Source: Dendrobates tinctorius
Lineage: Eukaryota
Length of the DNA stretch: 64,000 nucleotides
NCBI RefSeq assembly: GCF_039654945.1
Contig: NW_027361681.1
Coordinates: 3,720,001 to 3,784,000 of the forward strand
Direction: 5' to 3'
Positions 687 through 51,648 of the stretch are shown piece by piece. Position 1 is the first letter of the stretch. Every line of letters starts with the position of its first letter. The position numbers and the translations under genes are program-made. Below the pieces are notes generated by a model. The model saw only the letters and a list, made by a program, of their open reading frames with translations, was not told the DNA's origin and made no database searches.

Positions 687-2319
<1,633 letters not shown>

Positions 2320-2321
2320 TA

Positions 2322-2680
2322 ATGCTCCATACAGTTCATGATGGGCCCCATAAGATGCGCCATACAAAATACTCCCCATATAATGCTGCACAAAGGTTAA
2401 TAATGCCCCCCATAAGATGCTCCATAGTATAATATACCCCATATAATGCTCTATAAAGGTTATGGCCCCATAAGATGCTTCATAGATTATTCCCCCATAA
2501 GATGCTTCATAGATTATTCCCCCATAAGATGCTCCATAGATTATTCCCCCATAAGATGCTCCATAGATTATGCCCCAATAAGATGCTCCATAGAATATGC
2601 CCCCATATGCTGCCCCATAGACTATACCCCCATATGTTGCCCCCATTTGCTGCTCCATAGAATGTGCCCCCATATGCTGC
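2322..2680. repeat. ~27-bp minisatellite (CCCCATAAGATGCTCCATAGATTATTC) inside the Tc2-type element
   Basis: Direct tandem copies; explains the 9-aa periodic ORFs. Confidence 0.85.
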
Positions 2681-3794
2681 TGCAAAAAAAAAACGCCATA
2701 CTCACCTCTCCTGCTCAGGACCCAGCACCTGAGATACTCTCCTCTCCCCCATTCCATCGCTGCTCACCGCTGTCTGCCATGTCGTCTGTCAGTGACGTTC
2801 AGGCAGAAGAGGGCACGGCGCCCACTAACCACGTCACCGCGCCCTCTGCTGGCTAAACGTCATAGACAGACGACGCAGCAGACAGCGGTGAGCAGCGATG
2901 GACCGGGGGACAGGTGAATATCGCTATACTTACCCCCTTCTGGCGTGATCTCTGCAGCCCCGTTTCTCCACGGTCTCCCTTCCTGCCTTCAGCGGTCACG
3001 TGATACCGCTCATTACACTCATGAATATGCGCATATTCATGAGTTTAATGAGCGGTATCGTGACCGCTGAAGGCGGGAAGGGAGACCGTAGAGAAGCGGG
3101 GGGGCTGCAGAAACCGCGCCAGGGGGGGTAAGTATGATCTGTGACATCCCCGCTCCCCCGCCGACCCCCAGGTATATGACTCGTGTATAAGCCGTGAGGG
3201 GGGGGACTTTCAGCCCAAAAAAATGGGCTGAAAATCTCGGCTTATGCATGAGTATATACGGTACCTTATGTCGCAGCCAGATACCGATTCAATTTTTTAG
3301 ATCTCTGGAACAAGCTGAACGTCTTCCAGAGTCTGGATCCATTTTAGCATTTCAGAGGGATATGTAGAATGGCTAGTAAGAATCAGTGTTTAGTCTCAAC
3401 GTGTAGCAGGGCACCTGCCGGACCCGAATGTGCCAAAACTGCCTCTCTAGGACCGTCCAGTAAGGAGTTATGACCCATCTTAGGTTTTAGAGTTTTTAGC
3501 TGCTAGAGGCAAGGGGAGGGGATTTAGGTTCTGCCCGGAGGGCAGTGACCCAAATGGGACAAATGCTAGTGCAAGGCTATGTGGTCTCTTTCTCTGATAT
3601 ACTTGCGGCTCACTTCAAAAGTGGGGGCCACGTCAAGTAACGTGCTGTGAAGGGACTTAGAAACAGCTGGCAGCTCATGCCCCCTGCGGCCCAGCGCTCA
3701 TATGGTCGAACATCCCACCAGGAATTGATATGATCCTTCTGCTTAGATGTGTTGTACTTCACCTGTATTTGCATATCTGACCATTGTATGTGTA

Positions 3795-4297
3795 CAGTGG
3801 GTGCGGAAAGTATTCAGACCCCTTTACATTTTTCACTGTTTCATTGCAGCCATTTGGTAAATTAAAAAAAGGTAATTTTTTTTCTCATTAATGTACACTC
3901 TGCACCCCATCTTGACTCAAAAAAAAAACACAGAAATGTAGAAATTTTTGCAAATTTATTAAAAAAGAAAAACTGAAATATCACATGGTCATAAGTATTC
4001 AGACCCTTTGCTCAGCATTGAGTAGAAGCACCCTTTTGATCTAGTACAGCCATGAGTCGTCTTGGGAATGATGCAACAAATTTTTCACACCTGGATTTGG
4101 GGATCCTCTGCCATTCTTCCTTGCGGATCCTCTCCAGTTCCGTCAGGTTGCATGGTGAACGTTGGTTGACAGCTATTTTCAGGTCTCTCCAGAGATGCTC
4201 AATTGGGTTTAGGTCAGGGCTCTGGCTGGGCCAGTCAAGTGGCTGCAATGAAAGAGTGAAAGATGTAAAGTGATCTGAATACTTTCGGTACCCACTG
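3795..4297 (-). mobile_element. Tc1 internal-deletion derivative (transposase C-terminus only)
   Basis: TIR CAGTGGGTRCGGAAAGTATTCAGA, TA flanks; minus strand encodes [16 protein letters not shown]...KGAST. Confidence 0.9.
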
Positions 4298-5610
4298 TAT
4301 AACCAATGTGTATATAGTGTTTTGTCTAGTGTGCCTTTAAGGCGATTAAATATATAATTTAACCTTTGGCTGTTCTGTTATCTCGATCCACAAGTCCATG
4401 TTGTTGGATTAACTTTCCATGCTACCGGGGCTGAGTTCTGGCCCAATATAATCCCGTTAAGGGACTGGGTTTATATCTAACGAGGAACTGGTGACAGTCC
4501 CATCGGGCTAGCCAGGCGCTGTTTCACTGGTGCTAGTGAAAGGGACTTCTCAGCCTGTCTGGGGTGTGGGCGAGTATGGTGCCACGTCAGTGACTGTGTG
4601 GGCCGCATCCTCTCACTCCCAGTGCCTTCCTGGGCCCGTGTGGACAGGGGGTGTCAGTGTAAAACTGTACCAAGCTGACTTTACGTGTTCTCAGAGGGTG
4701 CGGAACGTCACGTTGGTGAAAGTGGGGAGACTGCATTGCGTGATCCTTCTGACGTAATAGTGTCCTCAGGCAAGGTGCAGGTTCGTCACGTGGTAGCAGT
4801 GGTGGAATTCTGTGTGATCTCCCTGGTGCCATCCTTCACACTCTTCGTGACTTATGTGTTAAGTGATGCTACATTGCTAGCACGTGCCATCACTTTATAA
4901 CAGCTGGGTTCTGGCTCTGATAATGAATCGGCTGCAGTGCTGATTTATAACTGCAGCCCCTTCTGAATGTTTGTAGCACAACAGCGCCTCATGGCATCCT
5001 GGCTGTATGAGGAACTGCAGCCAGCCCTACGTAATAGAATAGGCACCTGCTTTACAAGGAAAATGGACTTTTTAAATTAGTGCTATGGTCCCTTCATTCT
5101 CAGGATTTTAGGACTCCACTATTAAGTTGATGGGTATGCTAGAGATGTACCTTTTTAATAATATATATATATAATGAGTATCTCTACTTTTCTGGCCTGT
5201 ATTGTGGAAAATGTGCTCCAAACTTATGTGAAGAATTCATTTCCCACAGCAAACCATTGATCAAATGGATCATATGGCCTAAGACTATTTCTAGCAGTCC
5301 CCCCTCCTTACAAGCATAGATATGTCCCCAATACGCAGAGGGGAGTAAGTCCCATTGAGCACCACTGGAAGGATTGGGCATGTTAACATTTAATATGCCC
5401 CATCTGTTTGTCACCAATACAGGTGGAGTGTCATACACATCAGACAATCGGCAGCCTACTCTGACCAAACTAGGCCTAATATACGTGGCCTTGTAATCTG
5501 AGAGCTAACGGCACAGCAGTAAAATCTGAACACAGCTTTGACTGTGACTGGAGCATAATTGTAGCTCCAGACCAGAATGGGATTATTGTTTATTAATCTT
5601 ACAGATATAA

Positions 5611-28788: not shown

Positions 28789-29280
28789 TTAACTGTGCAA
28801 GGAATGTATAACACACTGATAAAGGGGTCACAGGAGGCCCAGAGTGACAGCACGTTGCCCCTGCAGTCCCATAGAAGAGCCTGCAGAATATGGTTTACAG
28901 GAGACACATGGGGATAGGGGAGAAGAAACTGCACTATAGGGGCCACTGGAGAAAAGCCTGCTCTTTAGTGGGCACAAGGACAGTGCAGGAATAGAGCCTG
29001 CCCTATAGTGAGGAGGTACACAAGGACAGTGTAGAGGAAAAGATTCTGCTTCATAAGGTCTACAGGAAACGCATGGTGAGAAGTGAGAAAAGCCTGCTCC
29101 ATAGGGAGCACAAAGACAGTGCACAAAAACAAAAAAATAGGACCCGCAAACCTCAAGTATTAATCTACAGGTGCAAGAAAACACTAAGTGGCCAATATAC
29201 AGACACATACATACACGATACGTCAGCACAAAGCAACTGAATACAAAAACTCCAATATTGCAGAAAAACATTAAAAACGT

Positions 29281-29355
29281 AAAGTTACTTAGCAGTTTTT
29301 GATCAAAGAATGCAAAAGCCATCCAACCACGTCAAGGTGACCTTTTCATATTGAC
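29281..29355 (-). ncRNA. Candidate HDV-like ribozyme (copy D)
   Basis: P3 ACC/GGU, L3 UUGACGU, P1 GUCAA/UGGAU, then GG, a P4 hairpin, J4/2 GCUAA and a degenerate P2; manual fold only. Confidence 0.45.
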
Positions 29356-29686
29356 AGTCTCTAAACACTAAATATCTTGCCTTTCTAGGAGCCAAAATAG
29401 CCTCATGTGAACGAGGTGTGAAAAGGAAACCAGGCATACAGTAGCTCTCAATTGAAACCTTATTTGAGGAAGATAGGTGGACATGGGTGCTGAACCCTGG
29501 AGGGGGCCACCACCCAACCCCCCAATATGTACTATACATAAAAGATAAATAGGACCTTTAATACCTTTGGTATTAAATTAATGCACAGGTGCACAAAGAC
29601 GCTATGTGGCCACATCACTACCATACACACGATATGTCAGCACACTGCGACTAATGAATGAGGCTGTTTTGGAGTTCATGTATTAA

Positions 29687-30207
29687 AGTGCACTTGTTTT
29701 GGCCACTATAAGATGTGGCTGCTGCCTTTCAGGGCTTATCTACAGGATTCTATAATGCTGTATATAAGCCCCCAGTCCGACCTGCAAGATAAGAAAAATA
29801 AGTTTTGCTATACTCACCTGGGGGAGGGGGTCCGGGTCCGGCGCCTGCCATCTTGCGATGCCGCCCTGCTGCTTGCTTCCTCGCTCCTGGCATCGCACGT
29901 CTGCGCAGGCGTACTTCTCTGCCCTGTTGAGGGCAGAGCAAAGTTCTGCAGTGCGCAGGGCCTCTGACCTTTGCTGGCACCTGCAGTACTTTGTTCTGCC
30001 CTCAACAGGGCAGAGAAGTACACCTGCGCAGGAGCGTAATGCTGGGAGCGAGGAAGCAAGCAAGAGGGTGGCATCGCAAGAAGATGGGAGGAGCCAGACC
30101 CGGACCTGCGACACCAATCGGGCCGGACCGCCAAAAGCCGGGTGAGTATAATAAACCTTATTTTTCTTCTCTTTCAGTTCAGAACGGAGGCTGGTTACAG
30201 GTTCCCT
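29687..30207. mobile_element. Kolobok/T2-type MITE with long internal palindrome
   Basis: TTAA flanks (29683-29686, 30208-30211); right end ACAGGTTCCCT; ~190-bp arms folding back around ~29965. Confidence 0.75.
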
Positions 30208-30932
30208 TTAATTAGTCACAGTGTTCTAATGCTTCATGTATGTATATGGTAGTGTATTGGCGACATAACATATTTGTGCACCTGTACATTAATTTAATAC
30301 CCAAGGTACGCAGGCCCTATTTTTTTCTTTTTTGTGTAGTACATATTGGGGGGCCGGCCACATAAGTCACAAGGTTGATACAGAAGAACCTTGTCTGGAA
30401 AATATGCGAGAAGTGTGCAGAAAAATAGTACATGAATAGGCATCTGTGCACATCAAGTCCTTTTGTTAGGTTTTCAGAGCAGAAACTTAGACGAAAAAGA
30501 GGGATTTTGGGTTCTTACCGTAAAATCTCTTTCTTGGAGCTTTCATTGGGGGACACAGATTACCATGTGTGTATGCTGCGGCTGCTAGGAGGCTGACACT
30601 ATGCAAAAACAAGAAAATTAGCTCCTCCCTGGCAGTATACACCCACCGACAGGCACCAAGTACCTCAGTTGGTGAGAAAGCAGTAGGAGAAGCAACCAAA
30701 AAACTCTTCAACATATGTACCAACCAAACAGGGGACTCAAAGAGCCAACACGGTCCAACTTAAACAGGGAGGGTGCGTTGTCCCCCAATGAAGGCTCCAA
30801 GAAAGATTTTATGGAAAGAACCCAAAATCCCTCTTTCTTTATCGCTTCATTGGGGGACACAGATTACCATGGGACGTTCCAAAGCAGTCCCGAGGGTGGG
30901 AAAAGCAATAAAGGAACGAAAGGAGGAAGAGC

Positions 30933-43800: not shown

Positions 43801-46455
43801 TTTGTGAAACCAGAGAAGTGCATGTTCTCGGTTCAGGAGATCCTTTTTCTAAGTTATTACTTATTGTTCACTGATTTTTGCATGGATCTGGCAAAAGTCC
43901 AGGTGGTACTGGGATTATAATCGTCCTGAGGACTTTACAAAAGTTGTTTGGTTTCGCCAACTACTACCGAGAGTACATCAAAAACTTTTCAGTAGTGGCC
44001 AAACCTTTGACGGATAGAGATCAGGAAAGGAATGGATTTTTCCAAGTGATCCAGTCAGGCCAGCGAGGCACTTAATATCTTGAAAAGATGTTTTGCATCT
44101 GTACAGATTCTTATACAGCCGGACGACACTCAGCCATTTTTTGTAGAAGTTGATGCGTCTGAAGTGGGGGTTGTATTGTTGCATGGTGCATCTCCTGGTA
44201 AATGGTGTCTGTGTGCATATTTTTCTAAGAAATGGTCTTCCACTGAGAAAAACTATGACTTTGCTAATAGGGAACTATTGGCAATGAAGTTGGCTTTTGA
44301 AGAGTGTCGTTATTTTCTCGAAGAAGCAGTTCATCTGGTCAAGGTAATAACTGATCATAAAGATCTTTTATATCTTGAATCTTCCAAGTGTCTGACACCT
44401 AGACAGGCAAGATGGACACTGTTCTTCACCAGATTCAACTTTTTTGTCACATATAGGCCGGCGGGGTATAAAAACCATTAAGGCAGATGCCTTATCTCGT
44501 TTTCCTGGGGGTGGAGATAATTGTGAACCAGTTCCTATACTACAGAAAGGGGTGGTTAGTGCTGCTTTAAGTTCTGACCTTCAGAAAGAGGTTGCTGAGG
44601 CTCAGGGTGACACCCATACTACCTGTTCGTTAGGTAAACTGTTTGTTCCTGTAAATCTCCGTCTTAAGTTTTGAGCGAACATCATGATTTGGTCTTGGCC
44701 GGACAACCTGGTAATAAAGTCACTACAGATCTCCTTACCCAGCATTTTTGGTAGTTTGGGGTACATCAGGATGTCCGGGAGTATGTGCACATTCTAAAAC
44801 CTCTCATACTCATCCATCAGGGTCTCTCCACCCATTGGTGATTCACAGTCTACCTTGGACTCATTTATCGGTAGATTTCATCACAGATCTACCAATATCT
44901 TCAGGTAACACTGTACTTTTGGTGGTAATGGACAGATTCAGCAAGATGTCTCATTTCATTCTGCTACCAGCTTTACCCAATGCCAAGACGTTGGGGCAAA
45001 TTATCAGCAAATTGTGACATTACATGGGATTCCTACAGCGGGGGGTGCAATTTATTCCCAAATTTTGGAGGGCATTTTGCACTCATTTGGGGATCCATCT
45101 GTCGTTTTCTTCAGCCTTAAATCCACAGTCTAATGGGCAAACAACTTGTAAACCAAAAATTTGAAACTTATCTTAGGATCTTTGTGTCTAAGAATCAGGA
45201 AAAATGGGTTACTTACATACATCTAGCTGAATTTGCTGTAAATAATAGTTGTCATGAGTCTACTGGTAAGTCCCCATTTTTCGGGGCATATGGGTTTCAT
45301 CTTCAGTTCATCTCATTTAATAGAAATCGTCCTGCTGGATTACCTGAAGAGGAACAGTTTTCATCATCAATTATGTCTGTGTGGCATGGAGTTATTGATA
45401 ACTTTAAGAGGATGGGGTCCAAAGAGAGTGGCTGATCGGAGATGTTTGGTTGGTCTGGACCTGTGTGATGGTGATTTAGTGCAGTTGTCCTCGAGGAACA
45501 TTAAAAGTTGAAGGTTCCTTTTTAGAAACTGGGTCCCAGGGTCATCGGTCACTAAAAGATTGTGACTGTCAATCCCGCCTTACTTTGCCACCCACTTTTA
45601 GGATTCATAATGTGTTTCACCAGTCTCTGCTCCAAAAAATATGTTGTGTCCTCTGAACCATCATCATCACCACCTCCATCTCCAATCAGTCTTGATGTGA
45701 ATTTGAAATTTGAGATTGCTAAGATCATTGATTCTTGCTTGGTTCCTCGGTCTCTTCAGTATCTGGTACACTGGAAGGGATACAGTCCTGAAAAAGAGGA
45801 CATGGGTAACAGAATTTTATGTTCATGTGATCAGGTTGATCTGGTCTTTTCACGCGGAACACCATGATGGACCTCAGGGGCGAGTCTCTTAGAAGGGGGG
45901 TACTGTCATGGGTTTACCATGACAAAGAGGAGCCAGAAGACCGCAGCGTCTGATTTCTCCTATTCCTGCACTGGTTAGGAGCACTTCATCATCATATTAA
46001 ACAGAGCAGTTTTCTGCTAGCGGTACAGGGATTAATCTGTTCAGTTGAAGCTCCTGGTACTGTCTCAGCTGTTCAGTGTTGGCCACTCCACTATATATTC
46101 GCGCCTCTGGCAATCAGGGATTGCCAGTGTTAGTTTCGTACTGCATGGTTCTGGAGATTGAATGTGCTGGTTGTTTGAGGAAGCATTGGGAGAGCTGTTC
46201 AGAAGACTTTTGCTTGGTGATTTGTCTGTGTGCATATCCTCATCTTCTCCTATTTGGTTTTTCCTTCCTTTACGTCCCAGTGTTCCACTCTGTTTGTGAG
46301 TGCATATTTATATGATTGGTAATTTCATTTACCCCTGTACATCTTCCCTTGTTACACAAAGAAAAAACACAGTATGACAAACGTGCAAAACTACTCTGTG
46401 GTAAAAAAATATAACAGTAGACAGCAAGTGCTAGTAAAAAATGGTAACAAAAACA

Positions 46456-46535
46456 GGGTATTTAGTTGATACGTTTTTTGCAAGAAATGTATACTAAGCC
46501 ACTCCACCAACGTCACGGTATACCCATCTCGTAGC
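46456..46535 (-). ncRNA. Candidate HDV-like ribozyme (copy C)
   Basis: GCUAC-GAGAU-GGGUAU-ACC-GUGACGUU-GGU-GGAGU-GG-P4-CUAA-AUACCC; manual fold. Confidence 0.5.
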
Positions 46536-46688
46536 AATCCTATCTAATGTATTTAAAACCTGATCATGTGAACAGTACCTATATGAGCAGGATTCAGAAA
46601 GGCGCTTCTTATGTGGGCACGCTGTGTAAGACGGCTCTTTATGTGCGTGTCACACAAGAGGGGGGGGGTAAATACATTAGATAGGACT

Positions 46689-46768
46689 GCTCCGAGATGG
46701 GTATACCGTGACGTTGGTGGAGTGACTTATGTTTTTTGCAAAAAATGTATGCTATCAACTAAATACCC
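46689..46768 (+). ncRNA. Candidate HDV-like ribozyme (copy A)
   Basis: P1 GCUCC/GGAGU, P2 GGGUAU/AUACCC, P3 ACC/GGU, J4/2 CUAA; manual fold. Confidence 0.5.
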
Positions 46769-47103
46769 TGTTTTTGTTGTTTTTTACGAGCACTTGCTGT
46801 CTACTGTTATATTTTTTACAACAGTATTTTTGCACGTTTGTCATACTGTGTTTTTTCGTGTTTCAGTCTTTGGGTGGTGTGAACACTGTCCAACCGATCT
46901 ATTCATTTTTGTGCGCGTCACATGTGTTTTTAATCTATTAGTTCTTTGCTCATGCAAGTTTTGGGAGTTTCCCTCCCCTCTCGTGTGACACGCACATAAA
47001 GAGCCGTCTTACACAGCGTGCCCACATCAAAAAGCGCCTTTCTGAATCCTACTCATATAGGTACTGTTCACATGATCAGGTATTAAATACATTAGATAGG
47101 ACT

Positions 47104-47182
47104 GCTCCGAGATGGGTATACCGTGACATTGGTTGAGTGGCTTAGTATACATTTTTGCAAAAAACGTATCAACTAAATACCC
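47104..47182 (+). ncRNA. Candidate HDV-like ribozyme (copy B)
   Basis: Same fold with L3 and P1' substitutions. Confidence 0.45.
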
Positions 47183-47551
47183 TGCTTTTCTTATCATGTT
47201 TTACTAGCACTTGCTGTTATATTTTTTACAACAGAGTATTTTTGCACGTTTGTCATATTGGGTTTTTGCTTTGTGTTTCAGTCTTTGGGTGGTGTGAACA
47301 CTGTCCAACCGACCTGTTCATTTTTGTGCGTGTCACATGTTTTTAATCTTCCCTTGTTAGTCTGGTTTGTGTGTTCTTACACACTACAACTCCCCTCTTC
47401 CCTGGGTTTGGAGGAGGGGGACAGATATAGGGCCGATTCAGGAGGTTAGCAAGGCACGTGGCCATGGTATCTTCACTATCTGAAGTAATCTTGAGAGCAG
47501 AGAGGGCGCCCCTAGCTCTGGGATATCCTGCAACAGTGCCGTGACACACAC

Positions 47552-48035
47552 ATTACATTAATGATCCTGTATTGATTCAGAGTTATACTCCATATCTGTA
47601 ATCACTATTCTGGTGGAGACTGTGTACATACATTACATTACTTATCCTGTACAGATCCTGAGTTACATCTGGTATCATACTCCAGTGCTGCACTCACTAT
47701 TCTGCTAGTACAGACACTGTGTACATACATTACTGATCCTGAGTTACACCCTGTATTATACTCCAGAGCTGCACTCACTATTCTGCTGGTGCAGTCACTG
47801 TGTACATACATTACTGATCCTGAGTTACATCCTGTATTATACCCCAGAGCTGCACTCACTATTCTGCTGGTGCAGTCACTGTGTACATACATTACATTAC
47901 TGATCCTGAGTTACACCCTGTATTATACTCCAGTGCTGCACTCACTATTCTGCTAATATAGAGTCACTGTGTACATACATTACTTATCCTGTACTAATCC
48001 TCAGTTACACCGTCCAATATTCTGCTGGTTGTTAT
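47552..48035. repeat. 81-bp minisatellite (also 41230-41279; target of the Gypsy insertion)
   Basis: GAGTTACA recurs at 47660, 47741, 47822. Confidence 0.88.
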
Positions 48036-48801: not shown

Positions 48802-48999
48802 TTAGCAACTTTCTATTATGCTTTCCATTTCCTTTTCAGATCAAATTCAACATCACTGCTTGTGGGCAGTGAATAATGATACCCCTATTTACAGTGACTA
48901 ATGATACCCCTATTTATATCCAGAAGCTGATCACTTGTCCTGTTATCACCGCTGAAAGTTGGTCACAATTGCATGCAGTCTACGTCCTTCCAAGCTTAA

Positions 49000-49874: not shown

Positions 49875-51648
49875 AAGGTCAGGGGTCTCCGGCAGCTATC
49901 AGGTCAGTGGGCCTCCGGCTGGCGGCAGCTATCAGTTCAGGGGGCCGACGGCCGCTATCAGGTCAGGGGGCCGACGGCAGCTATCAGGTCAGGGGGCCGA
50001 CGGCAGCTATCAGGTCAGGGGGCCGACGGCAGCTATCAGGTCAGGGGGCCGACGGCAGCTATCAGGTCAGGGGGCCGACGGCAGCTATCAGGTCAGGGGG
50101 CCGACGGCAGCTATCAGGTCAGGGGGCCGACGGCAGCTATCAGGTCAGGGGGCCGACGGCAGCTATCAGGTCAGGGGGCCGACGGCAGCTATCAGGTCAG
50201 GGGGCCGACGGCAGCTATCAGGTCAGGGGGCCGACGGCCGCTATCAGGTCAGGGGGCCGACGGCCGCTATCAGGTCAGGGGGCCGACGGCCGCTATCAGG
50301 TCAGGGGGCCGACGGCAGCTATCAGGTCAGGGGGCCGACGGCAGCTATCAGGTCAGGGGGCCGACGGCAGCTATCAGGTCAGGGGGCCGACGGCAGCTAT
50401 CAGGTCAGGGGGCCGACGGCCGCTATCAGGTCAGGGGGCCGACGGCCGCTATCAGGTCAGGGGGCCGACGGCCGCTATCAGGTCAGGGCCGGGCCGACGG
50501 CAGCTATAAGGTCAGGGGGCCGACGGCAGCTATAAGGTCAGGGGGCCGACGGCAGCTATAAGGTCAGGGGGCCGACGGCAGCTATAAGGTCAGGGGGCCT
50601 CTGGCTCGCGGCAGCTATAAGGTTAGGGGGCCTCTGGCTCGCGGCAGCTATAAGGTTAGGGGGCCTCTGGCTCGCGGCAGCTATAAGGTCAGGGGGCCTC
50701 TGGCTCGCGGCAGCTATAAGGTCAGGGGGCCTCTGGCTCGCGGCAGCTATAAAGTTAGGGGGCCTCTGGCTCGCGGCAGCTATAAGGTCAGGGGGCCTCT
50801 GGCTCGCGGCAGCTATAAGGTCAGGGGGCCTCTGGCTCGCGGCAGCTATAAGGTCAGGGGGCCTCTGGCTCGCGGCAGCTATAAGGTCAGGGGGCCTCTG
50901 GCTCGCGGCAGCTATAAGGTCAGGGGGCCTCTGGCTCGCGGCAGCTATAAGGTCAGGGGGCCTCTGGCTCGCGGCAACTATAAGGTTAGGGGGCCTCTGG
51001 CTCGCGGCAGCTATAAGGTCAGGGGGCCTCTGGCCGGGGGCAGCTATAAGGTCAGGGGCCTCTGGCTCACGGCAGCTATAAGGTTAGGGGGCCTCTGGCT
51101 CGCTGCAGCTATAAGGTCAGGTGGCCTCTGGCTGGCGGCAGCTATAAAGTTAGGGGGCCTCTGGCTGGCGGCAGCTATAAGGTTAGGGGGCCTCTGGCCG
51201 GGGGCAGCTATAAGGTCAGGGGCCTCTGGCTCACAGCAGCTATAAGGTTAGGGGGGCTCTGGCTCGCTGCAGCTATAAGGTCAGGGGGCCTCTGGCTGGC
51301 GGCAGCTATAAGGTTAGGGGGCCTCTGGCTGGCGGCAGCTATAAGGTCAGGGGGCCTCCGGCGGGGGGCAGCTATAAGGTTAGGGGGCCTCTGGCTCGCG
51401 GCAGCTATAAGGTCAGGGGGCCTCTGGCTGGCGGCAGCTATAAGGTTAGGGGGCCTCTGGCTGGCGGCAGCTATAAGGTCAGGGGGCCTCCGGCGGGGGG
51501 CAGCTATAAGGTTAGGGGGCCTCTGGCTCGCGGCAGCTATAAGGTCAGGGGGCCTCTGGCTGGCGGCAGCTATAAGGTCAGGGGGCCTCCGGCGGGGGGC
51601 AGCTATAAGGTCAGGGGACCTCCGGCGGGGGGCAGCTATAAGGTTAGG
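49875..51648. repeat. GC-rich tandem array: 26-bp unit switching to a related 33-bp unit
   Basis: GCTATCAGGTCAGGGGGCCGACGGCA to ~50580, then GCTATAAGGTYAGGGGGCCTCTGGCTCGCGGCA. Confidence 0.97.

Follow-up and report, generated by a model that had tools for sequence, protein, structure and literature searches.

Each copy of a mobile repeat of ~415 bases in this frog-like genome carries the fold of a hepatitis-delta-type (HDV-like) self-cutting RNA in which two base pairs next to the predicted cut site are flipped. Because the same flipped version is common in phages and sits at the exact 5′ end of an insect-type LINE, it is probably a real, largely unrecognised form of a known ribozyme, although cutting itself is inferred from sequence alone and the three copies of this repeat studied here are damaged. 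We consider this reading more likely than not, with a probability of roughly 0.65.

Three copies of the motif within one insertion

The window, that is, the whole stretch of 64,000 nucleotides that was analysed, contains three copies of an ~85-nt motif inside one insertion of ~1 kb (46355-47349), and a diverged fourth copy elsewhere. An earlier sequence-only reading had proposed an HDV/CPEB3-like fold repeated in a 415-bp tandem unit, with three copies whose GCUCC begins at 46689(+), 47104(+) and 46535(-), and this observation is confirmed: all three copies lie at those positions. The features are as follows.

46345-46354: left target-site duplication, TCCCTTGTTA, extending to ATCTTCCCTTGTTA (46341-54) if the 4-nt microhomology with the 3′ end of the unit is counted; ATCT is also the last 4 nt of the unit at the internal unit junction, 46941-44.
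46355-46667, minus strand: inverted partial copy of the unit, equivalent to 47276 down to 46971, carrying motif copy C (91% identity over 315 nt by BLAST; inverted repeats I1, I2, I4 and I5).
46456-46537, minus strand: ribozyme-like motif, copy C; P1 46537-31 (UUGCUAC), P2 46525-20, P3 46519-17, L3 46516-09, P3′ 46508-06, P1′ 46505-46499, C38-U39 46498-97, J4/2 CUAA 46465-62, P2′ 46461-56.
46669-46937, plus strand: first, partial direct unit, equivalent to 47084-47352, carrying motif copy A (85% identity over 280 nt by BLAST; direct repeats D3, D5, D6 and D7 at spacing 412-417).
46687-46768, plus strand: ribozyme-like motif, copy A, with a predicted cut 5′ of C46687; P1 46687-93, J1/2 46694-98, P2 46699-704, P3 46705-07, L3 46708-15, P3′ 46716-18, P1′ 46719-25, C38-U39 46726-27, P4 region 46728-58, J4/2 CUAA 46759-62 (candidate catalytic C at 46759), P2′ 46763-68.
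46938-47349, plus strand: full direct unit (~412-415 nt), ending ...TTTTTAATCT at the 3′ end of the insertion.
47102-47181, plus strand: ribozyme-like motif, copy B; P1 47102-08, J1/2 47109-13, P2 47114-19, P3 47120-22, L3 47123-30, P3′ 47131-33, P1′ 47134-40, C38-U39 47141-42, P4 47143-71, CUAA 47172-75, P2′ 47176-81.
47350-47359: right target-site duplication, TCCCTTGTTA.
29281-29357, minus strand: diverged second family (F2, as opposed to F1, the family of the 415-bp unit) carrying the same motif; P1 CUGUCAA 29357-51, an ACC-UUGACGU-GGU core, P1′ UGGAUGG, C-U, CUAA 29292-89, P2′ 29286-81.

A 27-nt core pattern matched exactly three times in the window with up to 3 mismatches, against 0 expected from shuffles, and a BLAST search with the unit found no other copy in the window. 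The 415-bp period is real, in that direct-repeat families are spaced 412-417 apart. However, the tandem unit proposed in the sequence-only reading is not an array but a single insertion, comprising 1.64 direct units (46669-47349) preceded by the inverted partial copy, all within one direct duplication of 10-14 bp whose identical 14-mer, ATCTTCCCTTGTTA, lies at 46341-54 and 47346-59. The 3′ tail of the unit is ...GTCACATGTTTTTAATCT. At this locus the direct part starts 18 nt upstream of C1 rather than at C1.

The helices are as had been described: P2 is GGGUAU/AUACCC, P3 is ACC/GGU, L3 is GUGACGUU, and CUAA is followed at once by P2′ (AUACCC) in copies A, B and C, which places the candidate catalytic C by sequence position only. 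The consensus P1, CUGCUCC/GGAGUGG, forms 7 pairs, 2 of which are wobble, with one P1 lesion in each local copy. The elements of a nested double pseudoknot occur in the order P1-P2-P3-L3-P3′-P1′-P1.1′-P4-J4/2-P2′ in copies A, B, C and F2, although P2 of F2 fits only with one mismatch and the c...G-N bulge geometry that is also seen in phages. P4 is a weak A/U hairpin, or absent, and a competing nested pairing, UUGGU.../...UCAACUAA, can sequester J4/2. A relaxed HDV-type descriptor hit only copies A and C in 128 kb of both strands, copy B failing on its L3 lesion, and hit 2 times in 120 dinucleotide-preserving shuffles of the window.

As the sequence-only reading had stated, each copy has its own lesions, and all three carry lesions in P1, L3 or P1′. 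Copy A has G37 to A (46725) and a rearranged P4; copy B has an L3 G to A (47128) and a P1′ G to U (47134); copy C has C1 to U (46537) and C6 to A (46532). Differences between copies B and C are spread evenly, so the locus decays neutrally. In contrast, the family as a whole is abundant and its consensus is intact. Thousands of contigs from three organisms aligned to the unit, indicating a very high-copy family; tandem joints of 415/416 nt appear in DNA contigs of two organisms; and the consensus restores both lesions of copy B, 47128 A to G (3539 of 3912 depth) and 47134 T to G, with few variants listed inside the motif. These data were assembled Logan contigs without molecule ends, in which coverage in the RNA-labelled runs roughly follows the DNA repeat profile, and they are therefore no evidence for or against processing; one joint in an RNA-labelled run that goes back 403 does not separate a circle from a tandem transcript. 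The most abundant k-mers of the family lie just upstream of C1 (47062-47097) and in the P4/P2′ part, not in the catalytic core.

The motif is the only similarity between the F1 and F2 units (67% over 82 nt, E 0.004), which are otherwise unalignable but share the tandem-plus-inverted architecture. Three of four changed P1 pairs between F1 and F2 are compensatory, but the alignment around P1′ allows an indel reading and the chance probability is about 0.15 by rough count, so we do not rest on this comparison.

Rfam returned no ribozyme family of any kind at the gathering score in the window or at E<=10 on 46200-47500, where neither an HDV family nor a hammerhead scores, although the HDV result says little because Rfam also misses the phage and LINE variants described below. 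No hammerhead core (CUGANGA...GAAA) is present on either strand of either family. A tRNA-like or SINE-head reading of GGUGGAGUGGCUUAG was dropped because there is no tRNA hit in the region at E<=10. Only one-mismatch matches to octamer promoter motifs were found (46952 and 29310), from which nothing can be concluded.

Related elements in phages and a LINE

Does the motif belong to a natural class? We searched IMG/VR with a pattern taken from the frog core (ACC-KUGACGU(U)-GGU-N5GG-CU...CUAA-P2′) and parsed 108 distinct elements with the complete HDV-like double pseudoknot. Of 227 distinct core contexts, 146 pass the fold, against 198 of 4540 (4.4%) with shuffled flanks. Because the phage set was retrieved with the frog core, core identity is by construction, and only P1, P2, P3, positions 1, 2 and 36-39 (in the free scans), the adjacency of CUAA and the context are independent. 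P1, P2 and P3 covary in these elements. In 42 minimal phage elements, P1 pairs 3-7 all covary, with 98% paired cells against 39-57% when the partner is slid, and the first P3 pair switches from A-U to G-C. J4/2 in the class is C-N-R-A. A G at the first L3 position, as in F1 (GUGACGUU), instead of U is rare, occurring in 1 of 108 elements.

We then ran two scans that leave positions 36-39 free. Among 32 folded elements with L3 UUGACGU, positions 38-39 are CU in 32/32 and the first P1 pair is C-G in 27/32, whereas among 74 folded elements from the same database with the canonical L3 UCCACGU, positions 38-39 are GG in 67/74 and the first P1 pair is G.U or G-C in 65/74. L3 position 22 and position 38 thus switch together (C-G in published theta ribozymes, G-C here), and the first P1 pair flips with them, from G.U to C-G. 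We define this variant class by L3 KUGNCGU(U), CU at positions 38-39, a first pair of C-G (sometimes U.G) and C-N-R-A before P2′. All four copies in the window carry this L3 type and CU at 38-39, copy B departing from the L3 pattern by its lesion at 47128; the first pair is C-G in B and F2, U.G in C and broken in A, and the consensus has C1-G37. In P1.1 there is one Watson-Crick pair (G22-C38) plus U21.U39, the 22-38 pair being supported by the strict co-variation in these scans.

A covariance model built from phage sequences alone gave the four frog copies as its four best hits in the window: F2 at 22.2 bits (E 0.0018), A at 16.6 bits (E 0.05, aligned with C1 at 46687), C at 15.7 bits (E 0.09) and B at 12.1 bits (E 0.77). 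The next hit is 9.4 bits.

A metagenome scan for more frog copies found none, but it found a LINE family instead. Seven independent insertions of this LINE (loci L359-L380 in the metagenome contigs), which encodes an APE endonuclease with a full Exo_endo_phos domain (E 2.6e-8), begin exactly at C1, being 96% identical from C1 onward and 33% identical upstream. Known R2 ribozymes likewise define the 5′ end of their element (PMC3774820). Among the ORFs near the poly-A-preceded copies (locus L388), no reverse transcriptase was found, the only match being a weak PHD hit below the Pfam cutoff. One phage copy lies 1 nt after the CCA end of a tRNA. This position and the LINE boundary are indirect indications of a cut 5′ of C1.

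Interpretation and competing explanations

We interpret the motif as a member of a variant subclass of HDV-like ribozymes whose skeleton is that of the phage theta ribozymes, P1-J1/2-P2-ACC-L3-GGU-P1′-P1.1′-(linker or P4)-CUAA-P2′, but in which the two stacked pairs at the active site are inverted: C1-G37 replaces G1.U37, and G22-C38 (plus U21.U39) replaces C22-G38/C21-G39. One such predicted ribozyme sits in every ~415-nt monomer of a very high-copy, non-coding, retrozyme-like retroelement. In this view, multimeric transcripts would be cut 5′ of C1 (46687, 47102, and 46537 on the minus strand) into unit-length RNAs with 5′-OH and 2′,3′-cyclic phosphate ends, the C of CUAA acting as general acid. 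These RNAs, probably after ligation into circles by a host ligase, would be copied by a retroelement reverse transcriptase and inserted as tandem-plus-inverted cDNA with a target-site duplication, the insertion pattern that this locus shows. Our analysis establishes the fold, its class membership, the covariation in the class, the copy number and the anatomy of the insertion, whereas self-cleavage and catalysis, circularisation and the identity of the reverse transcriptase (Penelope-like, or LINE with twin priming) are inferred. Catalysis is not guaranteed, because C1-G37 removes the G.U wobble implicated in metal binding in HDV (ref. 28 in PMC13635239). The three copies at this locus are mutated relics of one old insertion and are probably poorly active or inactive.

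The sequence-only reading had inferred a non-canonical HDV-like self-cleaving ribozyme and allowed two registers, and this interpretation is partly supported. Comparative evidence supports the core inference, a non-canonical HDV-like fold, and its second register: a 7-bp P1 starting at C, with a flipped single G-C P1.1 pair plus U.U, which matches both a large natural class with covarying helices and the 5′ boundary of a LINE family.

How else might the motif be explained? The alternative that survives best, although we consider it unlikely, is that the block is a structured RNA or DNA element that descends from, or mimics, an HDV-like fold but does not cleave, or is instead a recognition element for the mobilising reverse transcriptase or part of an internal promoter. 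The replacement of the cleavage-site wobble by C1-G37, the lack of cleavage or RNA-end evidence, the position of the most abundant k-mers and the neutral decay of the local copies are consistent with this possibility. Against it, the same core is kept in phages, a LINE and two frog families, with covarying P1, P2, P3 and P1.1 and an invariant C of J4/2 directly before P2′; the LINE copies begin exactly at C1; and the skeleton equals that of theta ribozymes, which do cleave.

The first register of the sequence-only reading, with cleavage 5′ of G46689, a 5-bp P1 opening with G.U and the following GG as an unpaired P1.1 strand, is not supported and appears very unlikely. In F1 the third P1 pair happens to be G.U and is followed by 4 more pairs, but in the class position 3 is an ordinary covarying pair (C-G 19, U-A 12, A-U 5, G-C 2, G-U 2, U-G 1 and one unpaired), pair 2 also covaries (C-G, U-A, A-U), the LINE boundary lies two nt upstream of that G, and L3 has no CC to pair with the GG.

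Chance resemblance of an ordinary dispersed or satellite repeat, suggested by the short helices, by a descriptor relaxed after the fact and by the chance matches that a loose descriptor would give in a genome of this size, is already very unlikely, because a 16-18-nt core from the frog copies retrieves more than 100 folded, covarying elements elsewhere, a model that never saw frog sequence ranks all four frog copies first, and the motif is the only conserved block between two frog families.

Relation to known ribozymes and retroelements

The closest system is that of the theta ribozymes, minimal HDV-like ribozymes of gut phages (Kienbeck et al. 2024, PMC10879173). These published, experimentally cleaving ribozymes share the skeleton and core letters, P1(7)-J1/2-P2-ACC-U..ACGU-GGU-P1′-2 nt-linker-CUAA(N)-P2′, in their case with CC after the U of L3 and GG as the 2 nt, and the variant class is abundant in the same kind of phage contigs. 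However, theta ribozymes are minimal forms without P4 located at phage tRNA 3′ ends, published members have G1 and a CC/GG (or other two-Watson-Crick) P1.1, and the string TTGACGT does not occur in the part of their supplementary files that we searched. Here L3 is UUG..., positions 38-39 are CU and the first pair is C-G, and the frog copies have a ~30-nt P4 region and sit in a eukaryotic repeat, not next to a tRNA. In the CPEB3 ribozyme and the Ackermannviridae and C. briggsae HDV-like ribozymes, P1.1 is likewise reduced to one Watson-Crick pair plus a U:U or C:U pair, an arrangement compatible with fast cleavage in the two crystallised ribozymes (PMC13635239), with a U:U second pair tolerated in a crystallised phage ribozyme. 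The CPEB3 L3, given as UUCACGU in the sequence-only reading, differs from the frog/phage UUGACGU only at position 22. In those ribozymes the remaining Watson-Crick pair has the pyrimidine in L3 and +1 is G, whereas here the pair is G(L3)-C and +1 is C.

In HDV-like ribozymes of R2 and other non-LTR retrotransposons (PMC3774820), a delta-type fold begins at the first nucleotide of the element, as the variant does in the LINE described above, and P4 is variable or absent in R2 too. In the frog, the motif lies inside a tandem monomer with conserved sequence upstream of C1, not at the 5′ end of a coding element, and its core has the flipped pairs. Animal non-LTR retrozymes (PMC7229834; bioRxiv 10.64898/2026.07.22.740005) resemble the frog family in their non-coding monomers a few hundred nt long (~415 nt here; ~170-400 nt for the retrozyme RNAs reported in PMC7229834), one self-cleaving motif per monomer (predicted here), short tandem insertions with TSDs longer than 4 bp and very high copy number in amphibians, but the type I hammerhead is absent here and the motif is delta-type. 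The partial tandem preceded by an inverted 5′-truncated copy fits the anatomy of Penelope-like insertions (PMC8557442), but LINE twin priming gives the same picture, with the outer end of the inverted part being the more 3′ position, as seen here, and no reverse-transcriptase partner was identified. Naiad-type Penelope-like elements lack hammerheads, which makes them a possible candidate partner.

We found no paper describing this variant or a delta-type retrozyme, in a literature collection that covers few subscription journals. A bolder reading, which we offer tentatively and regard as slightly less likely than not, is that of a "delta retrozyme": a vertebrate family of non-coding tandem retroelements that would make unit-length, probably circular, RNAs with an HDV-like ribozyme instead of a hammerhead. 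Its ribozyme subclass, with both active-site pairs inverted and shared with phages and insect LINEs, would have escaped Rfam models and published descriptors because they require G at +1 and a two-Watson-Crick-pair P1.1.

If the flipped-core RNAs cleave, the accepted HDV-like consensus, which requires G1.U37 and C-G pairs in P1.1, is too narrow, and a whole subclass has been missed in phages, LINEs and vertebrate repeats; the variant would also be a natural test of how the cleavage-site pair and P1.1 position the catalytic metal. Moreover, the retrozyme life style of tandem monomers, self-cleavage, RNA circles and reverse transcription would not be tied to the hammerhead, which raises the question of which reverse transcriptase mobilises the frog elements, hammerhead-less Naiad-type Penelope-like elements being one candidate and a LINE carrying the same ribozyme another. 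Very abundant frog repeats would then become candidates for small structured or circular RNAs.

A single tandem-plus-inverted insertion

Do the three motif copies exist as described? We found that the observation made by the sequence-only reading held, in that a 27-nt core (GGGTATACCGTGACGTTGGTGGAGTGG) occurs three times in the window with up to 3 mismatches, at 46499-46525(-) (copy C), 46699-46725(+) (copy A) and 47114-47140(+) (copy B), whereas shuffled sequences gave none, and a BLAST search with the repeat unit found no further copy in the 64 kb. Repeat analysis revealed direct families spaced 412-417 bp apart, together with long inverted arms of 136, 66, 62, 61 and 55 nt. Together, these define one insertion with the following parts:

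46355-47349: the whole insertion
46355-46667, minus strand: an inverted partial copy of the unit, followed by a G-run junction
46669-47349: 1.64 direct units
46341-54 and 47346-59: the same 14-mer, ATCTTCCCTTGTTA, bounding the whole

Because the first four letters of this 14-mer are also the last four of the unit, the duplication proper is 10 nt plus a 4-nt microhomology. The "415-bp tandem unit" that had been proposed is therefore correct as a period, but the locus is a single tandem-plus-inverted insertion and not an array. The right flank, 47350-47403, is itself a repeat, with a summed depth of about 2300-4700 in the DNA runs described below, so the element inserted into another repeat. An 81-bp tandem repeat (47546-47991; 4.1 copies, 88% matches) lies 200 bp downstream of the insertion, and shorter arrays lie at 48867-48916 (25 bp) and 49923-50000 (26 bp).

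To ask whether the motif is more than a chance resemblance, we wrote a relaxed HDV-type descriptor that required a 7-bp P1 with at most one mismatch, a P2 of at least 5 bp adjacent to a 3-bp P3, an L3 of 7-8 nt with CG at positions 5-6, one Watson-Crick P1.1 pair, and C-N-R-A directly before P2'. It hit only copies A and C in both strands of the window, copy B failing on its L3 lesion, and it hit 2 times in 120 dinucleotide-preserving shuffles. This is suggestive for one window but not on a genome scale, and we therefore looked for independent evidence.

A second family (F2, as distinct from the F1 family of the 415-bp unit) is present at 29130-30360. It is another tandem-plus-inverted insertion, with a ~420-bp period on the minus strand, and is interrupted between its inverted and direct parts by a palindromic element (29767-30192; arms of 101 nt at 87% identity plus outer arms) that looks like a foldback or MITE-type insertion. 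The only similarity between the F2 and F1 units is the motif itself (67% over 82 nt, E 0.004), which in F2 reads CUGUCAA-...-ACC-UUGACGU-GGU-UGGAUGG-CU-...-CUAA. Three of the four changed P1 pairs are apparently compensatory, but this count is alignment-dependent and our reading does not rest on it. One-mismatch octamer-like motifs occur at 46952 (ATGCAAGT, in F1) and 29310 (ATGCAAAA, in F2). Rfam 15 found no ribozyme family in the window at gathering scores and nothing at E<=10 in 46200-47500, and no hammerhead core was found on either strand. Because Rfam also misses every phage and LINE member of the class described below, its negative result carries little weight.

A class of elements sharing the frog core

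Patterns taken from the frog copies (ACC-KTGACGT(T)-GGT-N5GG-C, then variants with a free L3 position 23 or other P3 letters) were scanned against IMG/VR. Besides GC-rich coding false positives, they returned many AT-rich intergenic elements, of which 108 distinct elements were parsed with the complete fold.

Table. Features of the 108 folded elements
P1: 7 bp
J1/2: 0-8 nt
P2: 5-9 bp
P3: ACC/GGU 72, GCC/GGC 34, CCC/GGG 2
L3: UUGNCGU, rarely 8 nt
Linker or P4: 4-7-nt linker, or a P4 hairpin of up to 74 nt
J4/2: CUAA 65, CAAA 21, CCAA 12, others C-N-R-A
-1 nucleotide: U 57, A 46, C 5, G 0

Of 227 distinct core contexts, 146 pass the fold, against 198 of 4540 with shuffled flanks. In a MAFFT alignment of the 42 minimal elements, P1 pairs 3-7 all show changes on both sides, and paired cells amount to 98%, against 39-57% when the partner is slid; the first P3 pair alternates between A-U and G-C. 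As these sequences were selected for pairing, the percentage paired is partly by construction, and the shuffled-flank control is the fair test. At least six copies of the variant motif (P1 CUCACCA, P3 GCC/GGC, ~50-nt P4, J4/2 CCAA), among them loci L258, L266, L302 and L305, sit in one very large viral contig, IMGVR_UViG_650627024_000001 (617,453 bp).

Because the first patterns fixed GG-C, we ran two further scans that leave positions 36-39 free, namely ACC-TTGACGT-GGT-N13-16-CTAA and the same pattern with the canonical L3 TCCACGT.

Table. Positions 38-39 and the first P1 pair in perfectly folded elements from the free scans
L3 UUGACGU: 32 elements; positions 38-39 CU in 32/32; first P1 pair C-G 27, U.G 2, G.U 2, G-C 1
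L3 UCCACGU: 74 elements; positions 38-39 GG in 67/74; first P1 pair G.U 47, G-C 18, C-G 1

The second P1 pair also varies (C-G, U-A, A-U). Thus, L3 position 22 and position 38 covary (C-G to G-C), which supports P1.1, and the predicted cleavage-site pair flips with them. The published theta ribozymes have exactly the same skeleton (P1, J, P2, ACC, T, CC, ACGT, GGT, P1', GG, linker, CTAA, P2'), with G at +1, and TTGACGT does not occur in the portions of their supplementary files that we examined (PMC10879173). A 2026 structural paper shows that HDV-like ribozymes with one Watson-Crick pair plus a U:U or C:U pair in P1.1 cleave fast (PMC13635239), and we therefore considered that the weak second pair (U21.U39) need not be an obstacle.

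Where would the cut fall? In the phage locus L081 (10439-10498, minus strand), within an array of 20 tRNA genes, one flipped-core element starts one nucleotide after the CCA end of a tRNA-Asn and just before tRNA-Thr, which is the context of theta ribozymes. More telling is a scan of metagenome contigs for the 8-nt L3 form, which found a family of eukaryotic contigs (loci L359, L360, L362, L369, L373, L379 and L380) in which the motif, here with a long P4, is followed by a 439-codon open frame (L369:380-1696) with a full-length Exo_endo_phos domain (E 2.6e-8), that is, an APE-type LINE. Seven independent insertions of this LINE are 96% identical from C1 onward and 33% identical in the 30 nt upstream, and column-by-column conservation starts at C1, the upstream flanks being unrelated. 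This is the known behaviour of HDV-like ribozymes in R2 and related elements, where self-cleavage makes the 5' end of the element (PMC3774820). Of the two registers that the sequence-only reading had left possible, this supports the one with C at +1 (register ii) and is against the one with G at +1 (register i); its interpretation as a non-canonical HDV-like ribozyme is thus supported in part, with cleavage itself remaining an inference. In three other metagenome loci (L377, L387 and L388), a minimal flipped-core motif (CCCUCUC.../GAGAGGG) lies immediately after a 12-17-nt poly-A run in eukaryote-like sequence, which would fit a retroposon placed behind another's tail, although no reverse transcriptase was found nearby and the only match was a weak PHD hit.

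The frog copies and their family

The frog copies share the L3 type of this class (GUGACGUU in F1 and UUGACGU in F2, copy B reading GUGACAUU because of its G-to-A lesion at 47128), CU at positions 38-39 in all four copies, C1-G37 in the consensus, A at -1, CUAA directly before P2', and a 6-bp P2 in F1. A covariance model built only from the 42 phage elements, with P1 and P3 nested, was run over the window with filters off, and its four best hits are exactly the four frog copies.

Table. Best hits of the phage-only covariance model in the window
F2: 29357-29314(-); 22.2 bits; E 0.0018
Copy A: 46687-46728; 16.6 bits; E 0.052
Copy C: 46540-46478(-); 15.7 bits; E 0.09
Copy B: 47099-47161; 12.1 bits; E 0.77

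The next hit scores 9.4 bits. The E-values are modest because the 3' tail of the model is not matched across the frog P4 insertion and because each local copy has a lesion. Core identity is by construction, whereas the P1 register and the ranking are not.

We also compared contigs of four sequencing runs with one unit (46900-47420). About 2500 contigs from the DNA run X1 (organism A), about 2300 from X5 (organism B), 365 from the RNA-labelled run X11 (organism C) and 54 from the RNA-labelled run X16 (organism A) match at >=80%, summed word depths reach 1e5, and tandem joints of 415/416 nt occur, although no molecule ends can be seen in such contigs. The family consensus differs from copy B at 47128 (A to G, restoring ACGU in L3) and at 47134 (T to G, restoring P1'), and it has one more U in the P4 run; position 47113 in J1/2 is variable, and few other variants are listed inside the motif. 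Loose-end consensus sequences reveal other subfamilies, for example GACUGCUUCAAUAGGGGUUACCUGGACGUG, in which L3 reads UGGACGU, which would turn U21.U39 into G.U.

Several features weigh against an active ribozyme or make these copies atypical. First, C1-G37 removes the G.U wobble implicated in metal binding in HDV. Second, F1 has G instead of U at the first L3 position, which is rare in the class (1 of 108). Third, P4 is a weak A/U hairpin in copies A and B and is not predicted in copy C or F2, and a nested alternative pairs UUGGU... with ...UCAACUAA, as the sequence-only reading had suspected. Fourth, the direct part at this locus begins 18 nt upstream of C1. Finally, the differences between copies B and C are spread evenly, with 5 in the 80-nt motif out of 33 difference positions (9 of them one 9-nt indel) over 306 nt; the locus is a decaying relic.

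Inferred mobilisation of the repeat

We found no paper describing the flipped-core variant or a delta-type retrozyme in a literature search that was incomplete. The skeleton is that of the published theta ribozymes; the 22-38 pair and, with it, the first P1 pair are inverted. Animal retrozymes described so far are hammerhead elements related to Penelope-like pLTRs (PMC7229834; bioRxiv 10.64898/2026.07.22.740005).

How might these units have been mobilised? Our analysis establishes the fold, the class, the copy number and the anatomy of the insertion, but catalysis and everything that follows from it are inferred: cleavage 5' of C1 with the C of CUAA as general acid, unit-length RNAs with 5'-OH and cyclic phosphate ends, their ligation to circles by a host ligase, and rolling-circle or multimer reverse transcription. 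The inverted 5' part fits the Penelope-like pattern (PMC8557442), but it fits LINE twin priming equally well; Naiad-type PLEs, which lack hammerheads, would be no more than a candidate partner. The ~36 nt just upstream of the predicted cut site (47062-47097; CAUGAUCAGGUAUUAAAUACAUUAGAUAGG) carry the highest k-mer depth of the whole unit in all runs; they would be the 3' end of a processed unit RNA and could be the part recognised by the reverse transcriptase. In this view, reverse transcription would have started at a microhomology (ATCT) with the nicked target, which would explain tandem units whose ends do not coincide with the cut site.
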